This document shows positions 49,094 to 64,000 of a stretch of DNA of 64,000 bases, piece by piece. The notes under the pieces were generated by a model, which was not told the DNA's origin, searched no databases, and was given only the letters and a program-made list of their open reading frames with translations. Each line of letters opens with the position of its first letter. The first letter of the stretch is position 1. Made by a program: the position numbers and the translations under genes. The DNA lies in the sequence record NC_004629.1, one strand, 5' to 3'.

Positions 49094-49792
49094 ATGCAGT
49101 ATACTTTAGGTACAATAACCCTAGAGGAAACTGCAATGGCCGTATTAGACCGTCAATTTAATATTCGTTTAAATGGTGCTGATTTAGATAAACAAAAGCG
49201 AATTATTAAAGAAATTTATACCAGGATTGCAAATGTGAATAACACAGTAATCAATGGTACTACTGTAAGACTGATTTTATTTGTTAAAGCTAATGGCCAA
49301 GTGGCTACTGGAAGCGATGCTATTAAACTAATCAACGATGCAGAAACTAATCTACAGGCGTGGGTTCTTTCTAATCGCTTTATCTTTAAATGGATGTTTA
49401 GCCATGCTAGTGATTTTGGTGCAATCTCTTCCAATTTTGAAGAAGTTTCACCAGGTGTTTATGATTGGAGTAAACGCCGTAGCTTTAATAAAGAATTTGA
49501 TGATGAGCTAGCTAAAGCAAAAGAACGAAAACTAATTCGTCAAAATAAACCTACTCTATTTAAAACTATTAAGAAAGTAGGTAAAGCTGCATATGAAACT
49601 ATTTCAGATAACTCAACTGCAATCGTAAGTTTAACTGCTATTGGACTATTAGCTCTTAAAGTAACATCTGATCATAATCAAGTTATTAACCAAATGAATG
49701 TTATTAAGAAATCAATTGGTAATATTGAGCTACCACCTGTTGAAGTAATCGTAAATACAGTTGGTGATGTATTAGATATCGATTTGTATTAA
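49094..49792 (+). CDS. Hypothetical membrane protein, 232 aa
   Basis: Hydrophobic segment STAIVSLTAIGLLAL near the C-terminus. Confidence 0.7.
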   Translation: MQYTLGTITLEETAMAVLDRQFNIRLNGADLDKQKRIIKEIYTRIANVNNTVINGTTVRLILFVKANGQVATGSDAIKLINDAETNLQAWVLSNRFIFKWMFSHASDFGAISSNFEEVSPGVYDWSKRRSFNKEFDDELAKAKERKLIRQNKPTLFKTIKKVGKAAYETISDNSTAIVSLTAIGLLALKVTSDHNQVINQMNVIKKSIGNIELPPVEVIVNTVGDVLDIDLY

Positions 49793-49801
49793 GTGCATAA
49801 C

Positions 49802-49822
49802 GCCCTCCCATTACGGGAGGGC
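49802..49822. terminator. Bidirectional hairpin terminator
   Basis: GCCCTCCC-ATTAC-GGGAGGGC, exact copy of the hairpins at 9072 and 54309. Confidence 0.85.
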
Positions 49823-49837
49823 TATATGTCGTTAATA

Positions 49838-50353
49838 TCAATCGTTTTCTAATTCTTTTTCTCGCGCAGCATCCATCCGCTCCATAAATGCATTGGATTC
49901 CTCCATGATGATACCGATTTCAGTTTCACCTTCTTCAATAGTGTAATTCTCAAATTCCTCATCAGGAATATCTGGAATCTCACGTGGTGTTGCAGGGACA
50001 TCATTCGGATCACGTATTAATGGATTACGGTTCATTTGCATCTTAACGAATTCAGCAAAGCCTTCAGCAAGTTCACGGTTAGAGCGTGCACCCTCAGAAT
50101 CAACTTGAATACGACGGTTAGCAATTGTTGTCTTATCCATTGAATCTGTTAATTTAAGAATCATATCAACTGATTCTTTATCAGTAGGTACTTTACCAGT
50201 TGTATTTTCTAATACAGCTTTTAGTACTTTCTCTTTAACTGATTGTGTATACCGTATCTGCTGCTCATATTCTAGATCAGCATATACCTTTTCTTCTGTA
50301 GTTGATGATTTCTTTTCTAAAGGCTCATCAGATAAATCTGCACCATGGAACAT
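49838..50353 (-). CDS. Hypothetical acidic protein, 171 aa
   Basis: ORF with GAGG RBS. Confidence 0.7.
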   Translation of the reverse strand: MFHGADLSDEPLEKKSSTTEEKVYADLEYEQQIRYTQSVKEKVLKAVLENTTGKVPTDKESVDMILKLTDSMDKTTIANRRIQVDSEGARSNRELAEGFAEFVKMQMNRNPLIRDPNDVPATPREIPDIPDEEFENYTIEEGETEIGIIMEESNAFMERMDAAREKELEND

Positions 50354-50432
50354 TTTATTATCCTCTAATTAGTAATAGTAATACCTAACATACTTACCAT
50401 ATGCTAAGTATCTGAAAAATAGGTCCTATATC

Positions 50433-50957
50433 ATGTTTAAGAAACTTATTCAATATTTCCGGGGCTTCCAAAAGGAAGTTGGTAAAGAACAACTTCTAAC
50501 TGAATTAGAACGGATAGATAAAGATATTATTTCAGGTGAAGAACGATTAAAAGCTATTAATAATTTCTGGCAATTAATTAATCTGGATGAATTAAAAACT
50601 CTGACCATCAGGAAGATGATAGGTGTTCCTGTCTATCTAAGACATTACAGTATTGGTTATTTATTAGATGCTCTAACTAGGTTAAATGATCATATTGCAA
50701 ATGAAGATGATCTAAAGATTAGTGAAATGTGTCGTACTGAGTTTATCGACAGGAAATCAATTGACCTTGATGAATATTTTATAAACAGTAATGATAGTTT
50801 TATTGATGTATGTAAATCTATTGAAACTATGCGTGACTTAATTTGGCAACAAACTGAATATCTTGAACAGATTAACCATCAAGCATATCAGCGCCAGATG
50901 GATAGAATGTACTATGATATTATTGAACTATCAAGAGCAATTATTAAGTTACTATGA
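50433..50957 (+). CDS. Hypothetical protein, 174 aa
   Basis: ORF, predicted helical. Confidence 0.7.
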   Translation: MFKKLIQYFRGFQKEVGKEQLLTELERIDKDIISGEERLKAINNFWQLINLDELKTLTIRKMIGVPVYLRHYSIGYLLDALTRLNDHIANEDDLKISEMCRTEFIDRKSIDLDEYFINSNDSFIDVCKSIETMRDLIWQQTEYLEQINHQAYQRQMDRMYYDIIELSRAIIKLL

Positions 50958-57620: not shown

Positions 57621-57818
57621 TTAGATATTGAGGTTCTTCATTAAGCGAGCGTTTAAAGCTGCTGCAATATCAGCCTCAGTTAAAAACTCCCCATTCAGAG
57701 ATGGGGAGCTGGTGGTGCCACCAAGCGATTGTAGAATTGCTTGAGTACCTAGTTTAACAGCAGCATGAAGAACAGCAATGTTCTGACCATGTGCTACATT
57801 ATTACTTAGCTTTTGCAT
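57621..57818 (-). CDS. Small hypothetical protein, 65 aa
   Basis: Overlaps the end of the RNAP gene and fills the gap before the 519-aa gene. Confidence 0.55.
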   Translation of the reverse strand: MQKLSNNVAHGQNIAVLHAAVKLGTQAILQSLGGTTSSPSLNGEFLTEADIAAALNARLMKNLNI

Positions 57819-60800
57819 TAGTGTTTCCTCTATATACAGCTACAAGATGTTTTCCAGCTGCCCACAAGATACCAGTTGTTGTAGCAATGATTTTAGGAGA
57901 TAGAACCATTCGTTCTTCTACCGATGTATTACCGAATAGTAGATCAATATTACGGCCATCTTCAGTTTCATTACGTCCAGTCATTACACGGGAGAATACC
58001 GTTTTCATCTGGTTAGCTACTACGCCTTTATCTCCAACACCACATGGGATATCATGATCGATATACACTCGAATAATCATGTGGTCATATTCTAAGGCTC
58101 GTCCTTTCACTCGATAGTTAGCATCTACTTGTCCAGTGAAAGTAGGTTCTTTCAATGATTTAGCTCGTTCAGCGCGTTGTTTATCTGACGTATTAGCTAA
58201 TGCTTGTAAACTTGGTGTCATATCGTCTATTTCACCATGATAGAAGCATTCAATCTTTGATACTGTACCTACGAGCTTAGCACGTGGCGAATATGCTGAT
58301 AGTTTGCGTAATGTCTCAATAGATGCCTCGTCATATAGTGAGTGAGCAGCTGTTTCAGGATCTTCAATTATACATAGAATTGAATTTAAGTCGACATGAT
58401 CCCCAACTTTCACCATATCTCGAATAGTCTGATCAAACCTAACATCGATATTCTTGATTGCAGTTGTTTGAGTATTTAACCTTTTAGCTAGGTCTTCAGA
58501 AATAACTGAACCGTCTTCTAAAGTGTCAAGGTTATCATCAAATGCTACAACAGCCATACAACCGGCTTTCCATAATACTTGCCCAGGCGTATACCTATCT
58601 TCAGAGAAATAACGTTTGTTATATGTGATAGTATCTCCACGTTTAAACTTATCACCTTTCTTTAATGAGGTAACAAGAATGTGTGGATAGTTAACACCAG
58701 CTGCTGTGCCATGAACTGTACCTAATTGATATCCAAATACATTACCATCGGCATATTTAACTTGGATACCATATTCATCAATAGCTACAACCTCACCATC
58801 TTGTTCTGCTGCTACAGCAAAGATAGAACTAGTCCTTTGGGCTATGATTTGTTCATAGCCTGTACGAACTGGTGTAACTGTATACCCATCAGCATAAATA
58901 CCTTGCTGCTGCTGAATTGAGATAAAGTTAATTCGCTTAGGGTCATCATGTTCGGTTGCAACACCAAGCAGTGCACTAGTTGAGAGTAGTCTAGCTGGCC
59001 CATCTGTCTTTGGATCAAACATACGCGTAACACCACGCATGTTTACAAAGTTAGCATCAGGTACTAAGTAAGCAATAACACCAACGTCACCTGAGTCCAC
59101 AGTTGATTCACTAACCACACCAACATCCGCTTCACCGTAAATACGTGTACGTGCAACCATTGAAGTTGGACCGCGTCCACCATCTCCACGATAAGTCATC
59201 GCTTCTTGTTCACGGATATTTGCAATGGGGTTAGAATCTTCAATAGTGGCTACTGTCGGATCTTGTACAATCTTGCGCCAGATCACGTGTGGATCTAACT
59301 CGACAGTTTGCACTGACCCACCATTACGCATATTAAATACACGTACCGCTCTATTGAGTTCATTAAAAATAGCCCCTGCCATGCGCTCATAACCACGATA
59401 GCGCATATATGCACCATCTACTTCTGCTGGACTCCAGTCGTTCGTTAATAACTCGACAGACCGATAAAGCAATCCTTCAAAAGTAGTTGGTTCACCCATC
59501 TCCTTGAGTAGACCCTCAGTGATTGGATCGACCCATGCTGAGAAGAGTGTATCAATATCACGTGTAAATCTATTACTTAATCCAGCTTCTTCAAGAACCC
59601 TGAAGTAAACATCTCGTTTATTGAAATCATAAACAGAATAACGCCGCAGTGATTTATGATAACGTTTGAGTCCACTTAATACAAGCATTGCTTTATAATC
59701 AGCTCGATCAAATACTAGGATCTCATCAGCGAACGCTAATGTATAATCCGTACTATTGACAACAATCCTGGTACCACGCTGATGACGCTGATAATTAACA
59801 TTCAACTTCTTAAGTAGATTGTTTAAGCCATGGTGATATGCTAAAATGAAACCTAATGGTAGCTCTTTACCACCAATTGACATTAGAATAGCTTCTAACG
59901 GCGCTTTGGTTAGATCTAAGCCAAGTATATCTGTAATGGTACCAATAGGTTCTAGCTCATTACCTGTTTTCATGTAAAAGATGGAATTCTTATCTAACAA
60001 GATAGCATCAGTGCCATTGAACCCCACCATTATCAAATCATCAGTTTCATAATCTTCGATATGTAATCCTTGTTTTGCAAAGAATTCATTACGATCTTTG
60101 AAATTAAAATAGAACACATTACGGTGATTATGGAAGCCTTTAAAAGCTGTTCCTAAAGTAGTGTACACCCTTGGTAGAACATAGTTGGATTGATCTAATT
60201 CAGCATAGGTAACTGAATGTACAGACATATCACTTCCATCTAATGCACGGTTGGTAATCGCTCTGATTAACCAATTATCAAAGTTGTTTTCAGCACGTTC
60301 AGATCTGGTCACAAAGGTCTTATTATAATAAGAGGTCAATGCAACTTTACGTGGATTAACTTTACGAATTGGAATATCAGCACGTTGTAAACGTTGGCGA
60401 TATGTTACCCCATTAGACATGAACCTACCGTCATTATCAATGACAGGGATACGGAACATTACTTGTGAACTTCTACCACGAATAGGCTTTAATGTAACTT
60501 TGTGGATTTGGTAATGGTTACCAGAATCGCGTACAGTTTCAATTTTGTAATTAGTTACTGATACGCCTTGTTTCTGAACAGATAACACACTGTTTAAAAT
60601 ATCTTTCTTTAATAAGACCTTGTTGTATTTGCGTTGGATGGCTTTTAACTTACTACCCAACATTGATTTATCAACAATGGTTGGCTTATCTTCAAAAGTG
60701 GTGTCTTCTGGAATCTTAAGATCATCTGGATGATATTCCATCGCCTCAGCGATCGTCATAGGTTCTACTGATTCATCATTAGGATCGGTAAATGGATCAG

Positions 60801-62157
60801 GTAGACGACGATACATAATCGAATCTTCTTGAGCTTGCTCGAATGTATTCGCAGAAATCATATTCACGCGATACATGTCGTATGCTTTAGCTCTAATGGC
60901 ATCGATTAGTTTATCTTCTTCATCAACTTCAGTATTGATGAATAACTCATCTTCTGGTACATCTGTTACAATGAGTTCCTTCTCTTCTTTAATTTGGCGA
61001 GAAGGTGAAGATTCCAGTGGATCTTTTTCAATGATAAGCTTTGTTACCTCAAGATCACTTTCTGGTGGTGGGGTATATGTTACCTCAATTGCGCCAATAT
61101 CAATTAAGTTAGTTAAGTTGGTTGGGTCAAATTGAACATCATCAATAACATCAACTTCAGTTACTTCTTCTTCAACGTTATTAGACTCAACATCCTCAAC
61201 CTCTTCTGCTTCACCTTCTTCATAACTAACCGGAGTTTCTTCATCAACAATAATATCTTCATTAAAGATAGGCGTATCTTCTTTAATTAATGAAGTATTA
61301 CCTTGGTTATATTCAACCATCGCTGATACTAGTGAAATAAGGCGCCTAGCTATTTGCTGGGTATCATAACCTTTATCATCTTTAATTTCTGGATCACGAC
61401 GCCATTGATCAAGCATCCCTAAGTTAATAACAAAGAATGAACTTTGTACACGGAATAAAAGATTAATGTTACCGTAATACTTAGCATCGATGACATTCAT
61501 GAAAGAACTTTCACGATCATCAGAAACCCAGCGAACTAAATCAAATATATTTAGAATATCAGGTGTATTGAATTGATTAGCTAGATCTTGAGTTAAACCC
61601 CCTCGTAGTTTATTAAAAGAAGAAGGAGGTGGAACTAACTCAGGTAAGTGTACATCAATGAACTGGTTCCAACCAGGAAAACGTTCACATGCAGCCGCTA
61701 CGCCACTCCAGAATGTACGCATGTCATTTGACCAACGGAACCATGTAGCTTTATAAGAAGCCATATAATTCCATTGAGGGTTAATTAAATTATAATTCAT
61801 TACCAGAATGTTCTGGTTTGATAATTTAAAACCGGTATCACTGCGTAAAGGTTTAAAGAAACGGTTCTGGCGGCGAAACTCTTGAATCATTGTTGCTGGG
61901 ATATTTGAAGTCCTACGTGGATTACCTTCAAATGTAAGCATATCAGTAACATGCTCAATATATACTTTACCTTGATGTTTGGAGAATAATGGGTCTGTTT
62001 GACTAGGACCCATTACTGCATTATTACCATCGAAGAACTGATAAATGGATTCGAAAGGTAGATCAAGTTTATTTAGAGCATGCAACTTAGGTGACTGAAG
62101 TTTAGCATATTCGCGTACACTATAATTTTTCAGAAACTGTGTAATATTTAAGCGCAT
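57802..62157 (-). CDS. gp178: Virion RNA polymerase beta subunit, main (N-terminal) part, 1451 aa
   Basis: RpoB-like motifs: ESTVDSGDVG (cf. ETPEGPNIG), HDDPKRINFISIQQQQ (cf. HDDANRALMGANMQRQ), LEDGSVISE, VGDKGVVANQMKTV (cf. GDKMAGRHGNKGV), IDLLF. Confidence 0.9.
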   Translation of the reverse strand: MRLNITQFLKNYSVREYAKLQSPKLHALNKLDLPFESIYQFFDGNNAVMGPSQTDPLFSKHQGKVYIEHVTDMLTFEGNPRRTSNIPATMIQEFRRQNRFFKPLRSDTGFKLSNQNILVMNYNLINPQWNYMASYKATWFRWSNDMRTFWSGVAAACERFPGWNQFIDVHLPELVPPPSSFNKLRGGLTQDLANQFNTPDILNIFDLVRWVSDDRESSFMNVIDAKYYGNINLLFRVQSSFFVINLGMLDQWRRDPEIKDDKGYDTQQIARRLISLVSAMVEYNQGNTSLIKEDTPIFNEDIIVDEETPVSYEEGEAEEVEDVESNNVEEEVTEVDVIDDVQFDPTNLTNLIDIGAIEVTYTPPPESDLEVTKLIIEKDPLESSPSRQIKEEKELIVTDVPEDELFINTEVDEEDKLIDAIRAKAYDMYRVNMISANTFEQAQEDSIMYRRLPDPFTDPNDESVEPMTIAEAMEYHPDDLKIPEDTTFEDKPTIVDKSMLGSKLKAIQRKYNKVLLKKDILNSVLSVQKQGVSVTNYKIETVRDSGNHYQIHKVTLKPIRGRSSQVMFRIPVIDNDGRFMSNGVTYRQRLQRADIPIRKVNPRKVALTSYYNKTFVTRSERAENNFDNWLIRAITNRALDGSDMSVHSVTYAELDQSNYVLPRVYTTLGTAFKGFHNHRNVFYFNFKDRNEFFAKQGLHIEDYETDDLIMVGFNGTDAILLDKNSIFYMKTGNELEPIGTITDILGLDLTKAPLEAILMSIGGKELPLGFILAYHHGLNNLLKKLNVNYQRHQRGTRIVVNSTDYTLAFADEILVFDRADYKAMLVLSGLKRYHKSLRRYSVYDFNKRDVYFRVLEEAGLSNRFTRDIDTLFSAWVDPITEGLLKEMGEPTTFEGLLYRSVELLTNDWSPAEVDGAYMRYRGYERMAGAIFNELNRAVRVFNMRNGGSVQTVELDPHVIWRKIVQDPTVATIEDSNPIANIREQEAMTYRGDGGRGPTSMVARTRIYGEADVGVVSESTVDSGDVGVIAYLVPDANFVNMRGVTRMFDPKTDGPARLLSTSALLGVATEHDDPKRINFISIQQQQGIYADGYTVTPVRTGYEQIIAQRTSSIFAVAAEQDGEVVAIDEYGIQVKYADGNVFGYQLGTVHGTAAGVNYPHILVTSLKKGDKFKRGDTITYNKRYFSEDRYTPGQVLWKAGCMAVVAFDDNLDTLEDGSVISEDLAKRLNTQTTAIKNIDVRFDQTIRDMVKVGDHVDLNSILCIIEDPETAAHSLYDEASIETLRKLSAYSPRAKLVGTVSKIECFYHGEIDDMTPSLQALANTSDKQRAERAKSLKEPTFTGQVDANYRVKGRALEYDHMIIRVYIDHDIPCGVGDKGVVANQMKTVFSRVMTGRNETEDGRNIDLLFGNTSVEERMVLSPKIIATTTGILWAAGKHLVAVYRGNTNAKAK

Positions 62158-62159
62158 GA

Positions 62160-62345
62160 TTAATCCCTTTGTTTGGGTTCCCCAGTCATGTACCGAAGAG
62201 TTAAATTGAGTGTATGGACACCAACACTAAATGCCAGTCGACCATCGGCATGTATATATGCAATACGTTTCTTAAAGAAAGCATCTGTTTCAGCGATAGC
62301 TTCCTCTGAATAAACTGCGTTAAATGATACAGTGTCCCCGTCGAA
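62160..62345 (-). CDS. gp180: Virion RNAP beta' subunit, 3' exon (61 aa: FDGDTVSFNAV...KQRD*)
   Basis: Starts with TTC GAC GGG GAC directly after the intron's terminal G; the stop lies 2 nt before the gp178 ATG. Not in the ORF track. Confidence 0.9.
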   Translation of the reverse strand, partial: FDGDTVSFNAVYSEEAIAETDAFFKKRIAYIHADGRLAFSVGVHTLNLTLRYMTGEPKQRD

Positions 62346-63788
62346 CGTTATGTTCAGTATCAGTCGTTAATTGATACCCGCACCATTACGTGCAGCTCTA
62401 GCTCTCGCTAGAAGACCAGACTATATCTTCACCTACAGCATTATCTGTTTAGGTGCTCTCCATTTCGAGTCACTTGACCCTACGGGGCGCAACCCCCTAG
62501 TCGTTGAACGTTCCACATATTACAGTTAAGTAACTTAGCGGCTTCGCTGCTGATTGTCTCTACCTAATCATTTTCAAACATTCGCACTTACTGTTTCCAG
62601 TTATGCTGTAGTTGATTAGTTTAACGAGAGTTTCCAGCAATTAAAAGAGTAAAACATATTCATTTCGGAATATGTGGACTTATGTATTTTACTGCATAAT
62701 TTCTAAAAATACAACCATGTTCAGATTTCCTTAGATGATAACCTAAGCAACCTGGTGTGACATTGAAAAACTCAGCAGCTTCCTTCAGTGAGTTTTTTAT
62801 TAATACAGCTTCAGATTCTAATGATTCAATATGAATTCTACGATGGGTTTCCACATATACGAGATTATCATTATTCCATGGCGTATCGTCATCTTCGTAT
62901 TTAAACTGTAATGACTGATTGTAAACAAGATTACTATTTTTAGTTAAACGTAATCTTAAAGTTTCACCATCTACACCAATTTCTCGGGCGCAGTGTTCTA
63001 TGCTGTAATAACGAGTTATATTGGTAGTTATAAGGTCTCTGACCAAAACTGCTTTGGAATTATGAAGTCCATTGATATGCGCATGTTCGCAATTTCTTTT
63101 ACGGGTAGCCCATTCAAGGTTTGTTAAATCATTACAATCTTTAATTGTATTTAAATGATTCACATCGAGTGAATCAACATTACCTGGATATTTTAAGAAA
63201 GCTAGACTAAGAAGACGGTGCATTCCTACAATTGTACGTTTACCTACATCCGGCTGAACACCATACATCAGATAACCATCTTCATTCATGTATGGTGAAA
63301 GATGATTACTGTTAACAGTGCTAAGTACTTGTCCAGCGCGATTAATCATGTATCTACTATATCCGGGAATATAACAGTATTCTTTTATTAATGGATGAGT
63401 AAGTTCGCCTTCAGGACACGCCCAAATAAAATTAGTTAGGCGATGATTACTTTTATTACCGTCTTTGTAAATAACGCGTAGTTTATGTAGTAACCGCATT
63501 GGTAATATGCAGTTTCTATACGTAACACCTAATACAACAGATAGTGACAAACCGTCAAACCATTCACCTGTTATATGTTCAGGAAAAAGATGTTCTCCTT
63601 CATCACTAACCATTGTGGTCAGTACGCGTTTACTTATACTTTCTCTAGCGATACCACTACAGCTGATTTCATACATGCCACCAGTATGTGGTATCTTTTT
63701 AAATCCTGGATTTTCAATGAATTTTTTTAACATGGTTGTTATCCTATTTATTTCCTATAGGATAACTAGATATACAGTATTACAATTA
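62346..63788 (-). mobile_element. Group I intron (IA2-type), 1443 nt, self-splicing ribozyme with embedded homing endonuclease
   Basis: Minus-strand elements: P AATTGCTGGAAAC, Q AATCAGCAG, R GTTCAACGACTAG, S AAGATATAGTC. P7.1/P7.2, P8 and P9 hairpins are present. The 5' splice site follows U and the 3' end is G; removal restores an in-frame ADFDGD. Confidence 0.92.
62660..63733 (-). CDS. gp179: Intron-encoded HNH homing endonuclease, 357 aa (NUMOD4-HNH-NUMOD1-like)
   Basis: HRLLSLAF...VNHLNTIKDCNDLTNLEWAT.KRNCEHA HNH motif, NUMOD4-like IPGYSRY.INRAG.V, and C-terminal HTH repeats (YSIEHCAREIG, SLKEAAEFFNV). Confidence 0.9.
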   Translation of the reverse strand: MLKKFIENPGFKKIPHTGGMYEISCSGIARESISKRVLTTMVSDEGEHLFPEHITGEWFDGLSLSVVLGVTYRNCILPMRLLHKLRVIYKDGNKSNHRLTNFIWACPEGELTHPLIKEYCYIPGYSRYMINRAGQVLSTVNSNHLSPYMNEDGYLMYGVQPDVGKRTIVGMHRLLSLAFLKYPGNVDSLDVNHLNTIKDCNDLTNLEWATRKRNCEHAHINGLHNSKAVLVRDLITTNITRYYSIEHCAREIGVDGETLRLRLTKNSNLVYNQSLQFKYEDDDTPWNNDNLVYVETHRRIHIESLESEAVLIKNSLKEAAEFFNVTPGCLGYHLRKSEHGCIFRNYAVKYISPHIPK

Positions 63789-64000
63789 ATCCGCCCCCAA
63801 TGGCGCGAGAATAGAAGGCGATATGGATACTGAGTCGTGCCACTGGGCTGGTTTATTTAATTCAAACACAGGGAATTCTAAGGCTGGTTCCAACGTATCA
63901 TCACGTTCCCATTGATCATTTAACGGATAACGTAATTCACCCACTACAGTTGTTTTAACATACATCTTACAGGGGATAGAGCTATTGTAGTTTTCTACAG
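63789..64000 (-). CDS. gp180: Virion RNAP beta' subunit, 5' exon (partial; continues beyond the window)
   Basis: Open frame ...VENYNSSIPCKMYVK...SISPSILAPLGAD ending at GAT, followed by the intron's TAA. Confidence 0.9.

Follow-up and report, generated by a model that had tools for sequence, protein, structure and literature searches.

Group I introns interrupt essential genes in several phages, among them the DNA polymerase gene of SPO1 (I-HmuI) and td, nrdB and sunY of T4. These introns are of the IA type with P7.1 and P7.2, and in T4 td a stop codon directly follows the 5' splice site, as it does in the gene 180 intron of phiKZ considered here. The phiKZ intron differs from the SPO1 and T4 examples in that its host gene encodes an RNA polymerase (RNAP) subunit and is transcribed in a phage nucleus, away from ribosomes, and also in the placement of its ORF, since in T4 the intron ORFs emerge from P6a or P9.1 and not from P1. 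A closer counterpart is the gp210 intron of PhiPA3 (Birkholz et al. 2024, PMC11620839), likewise a group I intron that lies in a virion RNAP gene and encodes an HNH nicking endonuclease. Both phages are nucleus-forming jumbo phages, and both introns sit at conserved catalytic-site aspartates, but the PhiPA3 intron lies in the gene for the beta-like subunit (a gp178 homologue), after HDD. Its endonuclease nicks and confers a competitive advantage (PMC11620839); nicking is thus demonstrated for PhiPA3, whereas for phiKZ gp179 it is predicted from sequence. HNH introns are also found in the virion RNAP beta gene of 201phi2-1 (gp273/274) and of Pectobacterium vB_ParM-25, and their ribozymes align with that of gp180, with P4, P7 and junction sequences in common.

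The gp180 intron is already known in outline. According to Putzeys et al. (PMC10914365), the group I intron endonucleases gp56, gp72 and gp179 were predicted by Mesyanzhinov 2002, and a later paper (PMC11512511) credits the introns in gp55 and gp180 to earlier work, Ceyssens 2014. The first-pass annotation of this DNA had supposed a previous description, which exists as a prediction only; our literature search found no paper giving the fold, junction or population data for this intron.

The window analysed is the whole stretch of 64,000 nt, corresponding to phiKZ 124001-188000 (AF399011 / NC_004629; window position = phiKZ coordinate - 124000); by megablast, positions 62000-64000 are 100% identical to phiKZ 186000-188000. 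Near its end, gene 180 is interrupted inside the DFDGD motif by an IA-type group I intron that is very probably mobile and self-splicing. The features of the locus, in window coordinates, are:

63786-65258, minus strand: PHIKZ180 as annotated, 490 aa, 'RNA polymerase beta subunit, structural head protein'
63789..64000, minus strand: 3' end of exon 1 of PHIKZ180 (the beta'-like N-terminal, catalytic subunit of the virion RNAP), ending ...APLGAD with its final U at 63789; the gene extends past the window
62346..63788, minus strand: group I intron, 1443 nt; the first bases, UAA, are a stop in the exon frame, and the last base is G at 62346
63738..63766, minus strand: 10-bp hairpin GUUAUCCUAU/AUAGGAUAAC, just ahead of the endonuclease start
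62660..63733, minus strand: PHIKZ179, predicted HNH homing endonuclease ORF, 357 aa, out of frame with exon 1
62160..62345, minus strand: exon 2 of PHIKZ180, 61 codons (FDGDTV...KQRD) and a stop
57802-62157, minus strand: PHIKZ178 as annotated in the phiKZ records

On the minus strand, exon 1 ends ...CCA TTG GGG GCG GAT, with T at 63789, and runs directly into TAA, while exon 2 starts with TTC GAC GGG GAC at 62345 and stays open to the TAA at 62162-62160, which lies 2 nt ahead of the PHIKZ178 start at 62157; both exon ends are as first read from the sequence. Exon 2 carries no annotation in AF399011 or NC_004629, and the stretch 62158-62659 holds no annotated feature in the phiKZ records. From the upstream stop to codon 53, exon 2 contains no in-frame ATG, GTG or TTG, and no ORF is listed for it. 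Joining the exons gives a protein of 551 aa (63.1 kDa, computed), compared with 490 aa (56.2 kDa) for the unspliced reading. The joined protein is identical to the uninterrupted KTN4_220 at 544 of 551 positions, including the junction ...APLGAD|FDGDTV. The profile phrog_2986 (539 positions) is matched end to end by the intact KTN4 protein (E=6e-229), and exon 2 alone aligns to its positions 485-538 (E=2e-15). A scan of viral contigs for interrupted homologues found five more distant loci at 67-99% identity, all five uninterrupted. Neither exon, nor the intact KTN4 protein, had a match in Pfam. The predicted tryptic peptides of exon 2 include IAYIHADGR and LAFSVGVHTLNLTLR, and the junction falls within a tryptic peptide of 63 residues.

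An intein, or the insertion of a free-standing endonuclease gene, instead of an intron acting at the RNA level, would also place an HNH ORF between two gene halves. The sequence refutes both: a stop codon follows the junction immediately, the ORF begins 55 nt downstream of the 5' splice site and in another frame, and a complete ribozyme flanks it.

Natural alleles define the boundaries of this intron. A 2001-base query matched 47 phage records, all of them Pseudomonas phiKZ-like, and the intron occurs in some form in 12. Ten records match over all 2001 bases and carry the full intron (two phiKZ records, LC, T2P, U1B, U5, phi9_PA9, PhiPizzaParty, Wadjak 1 and Wadjak 2). OMKO1 and fMGyn-Pae01 match the last 726 bases only, with a 481-nt intron copy that has kept the ribozyme and lacks the endonuclease gene. 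The other 35 alleles are intron-less and match in two pieces totalling exactly 558 bp, that is, 2001-1443; in KTN4, GGG GCG GAT TTC GAC GGG GAC lies within a single 550-aa gene. The junction GAT|TTC proposed in the first-pass annotation is borne out by all 35. The deletion comparison leaves an ambiguity of one base, the first intron base and the first base of exon 2 both being T, and the GAT|TTC register was chosen because it alone gives what group I chemistry requires, a U as the last base of exon 1 and a G as the last intron base. A deletion of about 960 nt of the ORF (roughly window 63699-62726) has shortened the OMKO1 intron to 481 nt and left a stump of nine codons. The population shows the classical cycle of empty site, full intron and intron with its endonuclease gene deleted, and this presence/absence polymorphism among near-identical phages is consistent with intron mobility without proving it. 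A co-conversion tract was sought and could not be called, because near-junction exon sequence does not separate intron-plus from intron-minus alleles: Wadjak 2, which carries the intron, has KTN4-like flanks.

It is extremely unlikely that the intron stays in place, with gp180 being the annotated 490-aa protein and the 61 residues containing FDGD made separately or dispensable. RefSeq and GenBank do annotate exactly 490 aa, and an ONT-cappable-seq survey found no splicing (PMC10914365). Set against this, exon 2 has neither a listed ORF nor an in-frame start before codon 53, the protein would be short of two of its three catalytic aspartates, and in 35 relatives and five more distant homologues the gene encodes one continuous protein. 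The ribozyme, moreover, has been conserved through compensatory changes, also in copies that have lost the endonuclease gene. Its complete retention in the endonuclease-deleted copies would count for selection for splicing.

The motif restored by joining is GADFDGD. When the C-terminal 101 aa of the intact KTN4 protein were compared with the PDB, seven of the eight best matches were largest subunits of multisubunit RNAPs (plant Pol V, archaeal Rpo1N/A', Pol II), each a weak match (E 0.07-0.8) in which NADFDGD aligned on ...PLGADFDGD.... The full-length KTN4 protein reached an E of about 0.5 at best against PDB sequences, among which there is no solved gp180 structure. Gp180 and Gp55 carry the Mg-binding DFDGD according to Antonova et al. 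(PMC10612078). Together, this statement and the PDB alignments place the intron between the first Asp and the Phe of DFDGD, and the equivalence to bacterial NADFDGD claimed in the first-pass annotation agrees with the alignment on the largest-subunit site of cellular RNAPs.

Group I identity, initially read from the letters, is confirmed by Rfam: RF00028 matches 62396-62717 on the minus strand with 92.2 bits (E=2e-23) over the full model, 1-253 of 253, compared with a gathering score of 50 bits. This is the only Rfam family to reach threshold across the 64-kb window, and homologous introns at six related phage loci score 74-90 bits. The helices of the core are:

62674-62668 / 62661-62655, minus strand: P2 hairpin CAUAUUC/GAAUAUG (alignment, covariation), with the ORF stop UGA at 62662-62660
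62649-62644 / 62461-62456, minus strand: P3 (Rfam and covariation)
62639-62634 / 62553-62548, minus strand: P4 (Rfam and alignment)
62629-62626 / 62560-62557, minus strand: P5 (Rfam and alignment)
62619-62613 / 62570-62564, minus strand: P5a (Rfam and alignment)
62541-62538 / 62516-62513, minus strand: P6 (Rfam and alignment)
62534-62530 / 62523-62519, minus strand: P6a (Rfam and alignment)
62502-62498 / 62423-62419, minus strand: P7 (Rfam and alignment)
62497-62494 / 62487-62484, minus strand: P7.1 (Rfam and alignment)
62480-62476 / 62471-62467, minus strand: P7.2 (Rfam and alignment)
62455-62450 / 62435-62430, minus strand: P8 (Rfam and alignment)
62412-62407 / 62402-62397, minus strand: P9 (alignment)
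62395-62390 / 62383-62378, minus strand: P9.1 (alignment)
62377-62372 / 62362-62357, minus strand: P9.2 (alignment)

We aligned the phiKZ gp180 intron with nine relatives, namely OMKO1 and Wadjak 2 (same site), four gp55-site copies, phiKZ gp72, and 201phi2-1 and vB_ParM-25 (beta-like gene). The structure tested, P2-P9.2, was written from the phiKZ sequence and comprises 77 pairs in 15 helices (720 cells). Across these 10 introns 92.4% of the cells are paired, compared with 37-46% when the structure is slid by 1-3 columns, and both sides have changed in 40 of the 77 pairs, these introns being related. No shuffle out of 500 reached the observed value on four of five measures, and one did on the fifth. 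Most of the covariation lies in P2, P5a, P7.2, P8 and P9.2; P7.2, for example, reads GGGUC/GACUC in phiKZ and GGAUC/GAUCC in OMKO1, with three of its five pairs doubly changed and 98% of its cells paired. P4 and P7 are invariant in the alignment and therefore uninformative by themselves. The P3-P8 and P4-P6 domains with the P3/P7 pseudoknot are present and supported by covariation, the core helices are complete, and nothing is missing from the conserved sequences of J6/7, P7 and J8/7. Thus P2, P3, P7, P7.1, P7.2, P8 and P9 all lie where the first-pass annotation had drawn them, and P2 (62674-62655) does overlap the end and stop of the ORF. Since the P7 5' strand is followed by P7.1 and P7.2 before the P3 3' strand begins, the intron belongs to subgroup IA. 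The hairpin at 62714-62693 with which the Rfam alignment opens is broken in OMKO1 and was replaced by a long-range P1, with these predicted strands:

63788..63792, minus strand: P1 5' strand GGAU|U, 4 exon nt and 1 intron nt
63784-63781 (UGUA) and 63779-63771 (UACUGUAUA), minus strand: predicted 5' strands of the P1 extension; 3% of shuffles are as good
62699-62690 (P1b), 62686-62683 (P1a) and 62680-62676 (guide AGUCC), minus strand: 3' strands, within the 3' end of the ORF

When the 481-nt OMKO1 intron is folded without constraints, the minimum-energy structure pairs GGAU of the exon and the first intron U with AGUCC directly upstream of P2, and two more helices join the first ~20 intron bases to bases just upstream of the guide. 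A two-strand cofold of phiKZ returns the same P1, together with P1a (UGUA/UACA) and P1b (UACUGUAUA/UUAUGCAGUA). The duplex energy of -19.5 kcal/mol, compared with -13.2 ± 3.0 for shuffles, is modestly unusual, 3% of shuffles equalling it. In the unconstrained folds, U63789 at the splice site pairs with G62679 as a U·G wobble. The six letters GUCCAC proposed as guide in the first-pass annotation are indeed present at 62679-62674, but the last C belongs to P2 and the pairing contains a C·A mismatch; the folds give GGAU|U with AGUCC instead. The guide tracks the exon at three insertion sites, with GAU/GUC in gp180, AAU/GUU in gp55 and GGU/GCC in gp71; in the gp72 intron, exon GGU and AAUU pair perfectly with AAUUGCC, followed by a long contiguous helix across the ORF. 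The last ~40 nt of the gp179 ORF double as P1b, P1a, guide, P2 5' strand and P2 loop, its UGA stop falling at the boundary of the P2 loop and 3' strand. As predicted by these folds, P1 and its extension close over the ORF, which is in the loop of an extended P1, where it had first been placed.

With the steps taken from the established chemistry of the group I family, splicing of gp180 would proceed as follows. In the pre-mRNA, GGAU of the exon would pair with the guide AGUCC upstream of P2, with the U·G wobble at the splice site, and an external guanosine bound in P7 would attack after U63789. The terminal G62346 would then enter the same P7 site, and the freed exon 1 would attack after G62346, joining GAU to UUC and yielding the 551-aa, 63-kDa gp180 with DFDGD intact. 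Unspliced RNA would give a 490-aa protein that ends right after GAD. Because this product would have lost two of the three catalytic aspartates, we infer with good reason that an active virion polymerase needs splicing. For its part, gp179 would presumably nick the intron-less alleles of co-infecting phages, leading to homing by recombination.

Some group I introns splice with protein assistance, as is established for systems other than this one. The 5-bp P1 is short and P10, read directly from the sequence, has at most about 2 bp, as might be expected of a decaying intron that needs the help of a protein from phage or host, or that splices so inefficiently that it limits the supply of virion polymerase. 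One transcriptome without splicing (PMC10914365) would fit such decay. We nevertheless consider it very unlikely, since no core helix is damaged, J6/7, P7 and J8/7 are intact, and the intron far exceeds the Rfam gathering score, while phiKZ grows vigorously as a laboratory phage and its packaged polymerase is said in the literature to be necessary for early-gene transcription.

Our literature search found no demonstration of gp180 intron splicing, and it found one survey, the only long-read phiKZ transcriptome, whose authors state that for the gp56, gp72 and gp179 introns it 'did not provide evidence' that splicing occurs (PMC10914365). In the native non-virion RNAP, gp55 runs at 56 kDa and gp71-73 form a single polypeptide (PMC4666361). 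The computed masses of gp55 are 55.7 kDa spliced and 47.9 kDa unspliced, and chain A of PDB 7OGP carries the joined gp55 junction ...KAPN|ADFDGD.... The sister introns are therefore spliced in vivo, and the negative survey carries little weight because it also missed these two introns with demonstrably joined products. The authors of that survey report for LUZ24 a false 'start site' at an intron 5' end, derived from the excised intron (PMC10914365). A six-frame proteomic search of phiKZ gave four new ORFs, all lying away from the 186-kb region, and turned up no peptide of exon 2.

The phiKZ genome contains three related introns, with RF00028 scores of 92, 88 and 76 bits. The one in the paralogous DFDGD subunit gene is:

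phiKZ 49168-50539: gp55/gp56 intron in the non-virion RNAP beta'-like gene, RF00028 75.6 bits

This intron interrupts the same motif as the gp180 intron but 6 nt further upstream, at N|ADFDGD as opposed to AD|FDGD. Both introns have an HNH ORF in the P1 loop, a stop codon in P2 and an IA-type core next to it, although the stop falls in the P2 terminal loop in gp56 and at the boundary of P2 loop and 3' strand in gp179. Their similarity is mosaic: they are identical at 81 of 83 positions from J8/7 through P9.2 to the terminal G and at all 18 positions of P7.2, whereas P2, P6, P7.1 and P8 are unrelated in sequence, the endonucleases gp56 and gp179 are 30% identical, and the guide is GUU in the gp55 intron and GUC in the gp180 intron. 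Phage 124.01 has no gp180 intron, and its gp55 intron has a gp180-type P5a (58/58) and P6 (33/35). This mosaicism points to module exchange between the sites. All 48 Phikzvirus records that match an intron-containing gp55-locus query cover at least 44% of the query, and none of them spans an intron-sized gap; this hints, without proving it, that the gp55 intron has become fixed and that the gp180 intron is a younger colonist. We give about an even chance to the proposition that the two are sister introns that colonised the same motif of paralogues and still exchange ribozyme modules by recombination, the guide having been retuned from GUC to GUU. If so, they would represent a natural ectopic intron transposition between paralogues, with ongoing modular gene conversion inside the phage nucleus. 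The sister gp55 intron and the module exchange are possibly new side findings.

The main value of the locus lies in the missing annotation, the splicing question and the sister-intron mosaicism. The Wadjak 2 record, the only other intron-carrying feature table checked, also truncates gp180 at 490 aa. Because these phiKZ and Wadjak 2 records lack the 61 residues that start with FDGD, the subunit that protein databases offer, and on which proteomic searches and structure predictions for the virion polymerase rely, is catalytically incomplete. With junction, fold and intron-less alleles now given, a splicing test is straightforward, and the full, endonuclease-deleted and empty alleles are ready material for homing and competition work of the kind done for PhiPA3 gp210, for which import specificity matters (PMC11620839).

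In phiKZ the encoded protein, gp179, is a predicted I-HmuI-like HNH endonuclease. It matches Pfam HNH_3 over residues 177-214 with 35.6 bits (cut-off 24.8) as well as HNH endonuclease PHROGs, and it aligns with I-HmuI (PDB 1U3E) over residues 121-229 (E=5.5e-8), keeping the catalytic His and the 'vnH ... N ... N' positions. A degenerate second HNH module considered for its N-terminal 117 aa was rejected as non-significant (E=0.23). Because phiKZ transcribes inside a protein-bounded nucleus that contains no ribosomes, the long-range P1 would presumably fold in their absence; more speculatively, gp179 would need to be made in the cytoplasm, from RNA that has been exported, and then re-imported. 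A P1 closing over a 1-kb ORF may thus offer a convenient way to probe how RNA folds and is exported and how the endonuclease returns to the nucleus. In T4, the ribosome-binding site of I-TevI is occluded. The hairpin upstream of gp179, whose 3' arm holds an AGGA Shine-Dalgarno-like sequence ahead of the AUG, recalls this arrangement and by analogy may have a regulatory role.

The gp180 site is not the only position in phiKZ at which this type of intron is found. The non-virion polymerase gene gp55 is interrupted at N|ADFDGD by a group I intron related to that of gp180, with an insertion point in the same motif, 6 nt upstream of the gp180 position, and a third related intron lies between gp71 and gp73:

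L004 4168-5539 (phiKZ 49168-50539): group I intron splitting gp55 and carrying gp56, an HNH gene
L004 19454-20671 (phiKZ 64454-65671): related intron with HNH gp72, between gp71 and gp73

The joined gp55 sequence is the one used in PDB 7OGP; in RefSeq, gp55 exon 2 is a separate small ORF (PHIKZ056.1) begun at an internal ATG. The gp72 intron splits gp71/gp73 at FHGG|KGV, and its P1, in which GGU|AAUU pairs with AAUUGCC, runs on as a long contiguous helix enclosing the ORF.

Judged from their aligned sequences, the gp180-site and gp55-site introns are mosaics. In an alignment of related intron cores (window 62346-62685, L004 5181-5539, and L006 1756-2118), the 3' domain is near-identical between the two phiKZ introns (81/83), and P2, P6, P7.1, and P8 are not alike. 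Phage 124.01 carries a gp55 intron with gp180-type P5a and P6, although this phage lacks the gp180 intron. Introns with the endonuclease deleted are found at both sites, and the following copies keep the ORF start, the ORF end, and the entire ribozyme:

L003 2898-3378: gp180 site, OMKO1, 481 nt
L007 ~1635-2114: gp55 site, phage 30-1, 480 nt

Several features of the gp180 locus bear on its annotation and expression:

window 62160-62345: gp180 exon 2, bearing FDGD
window 62157-62162: gp180 stop codon and gp178 start codon, 2 nt apart
window 63738-63766: 10-bp hairpin upstream of the gp179 start codon, AGGA within the 3' arm

Exon 2 is unannotated in the feature tables of AF399011, NC_004629, and the Wadjak 2 record, and two of the three catalytic aspartates are missing from the deposited gp180 protein. 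In joined gp180, the tryptic peptide spanning the junction comprises 63 residues (about 453-515), including a Lys-Pro at which cleavage is unlikely; the splice junction would be invisible to standard tryptic proteomics, even with exon 2 in the database. The 2-nt spacing suggests translational coupling of gp180 and gp178, two virion polymerase subunits, and the hairpin may occlude the ribosome-binding site of gp179.
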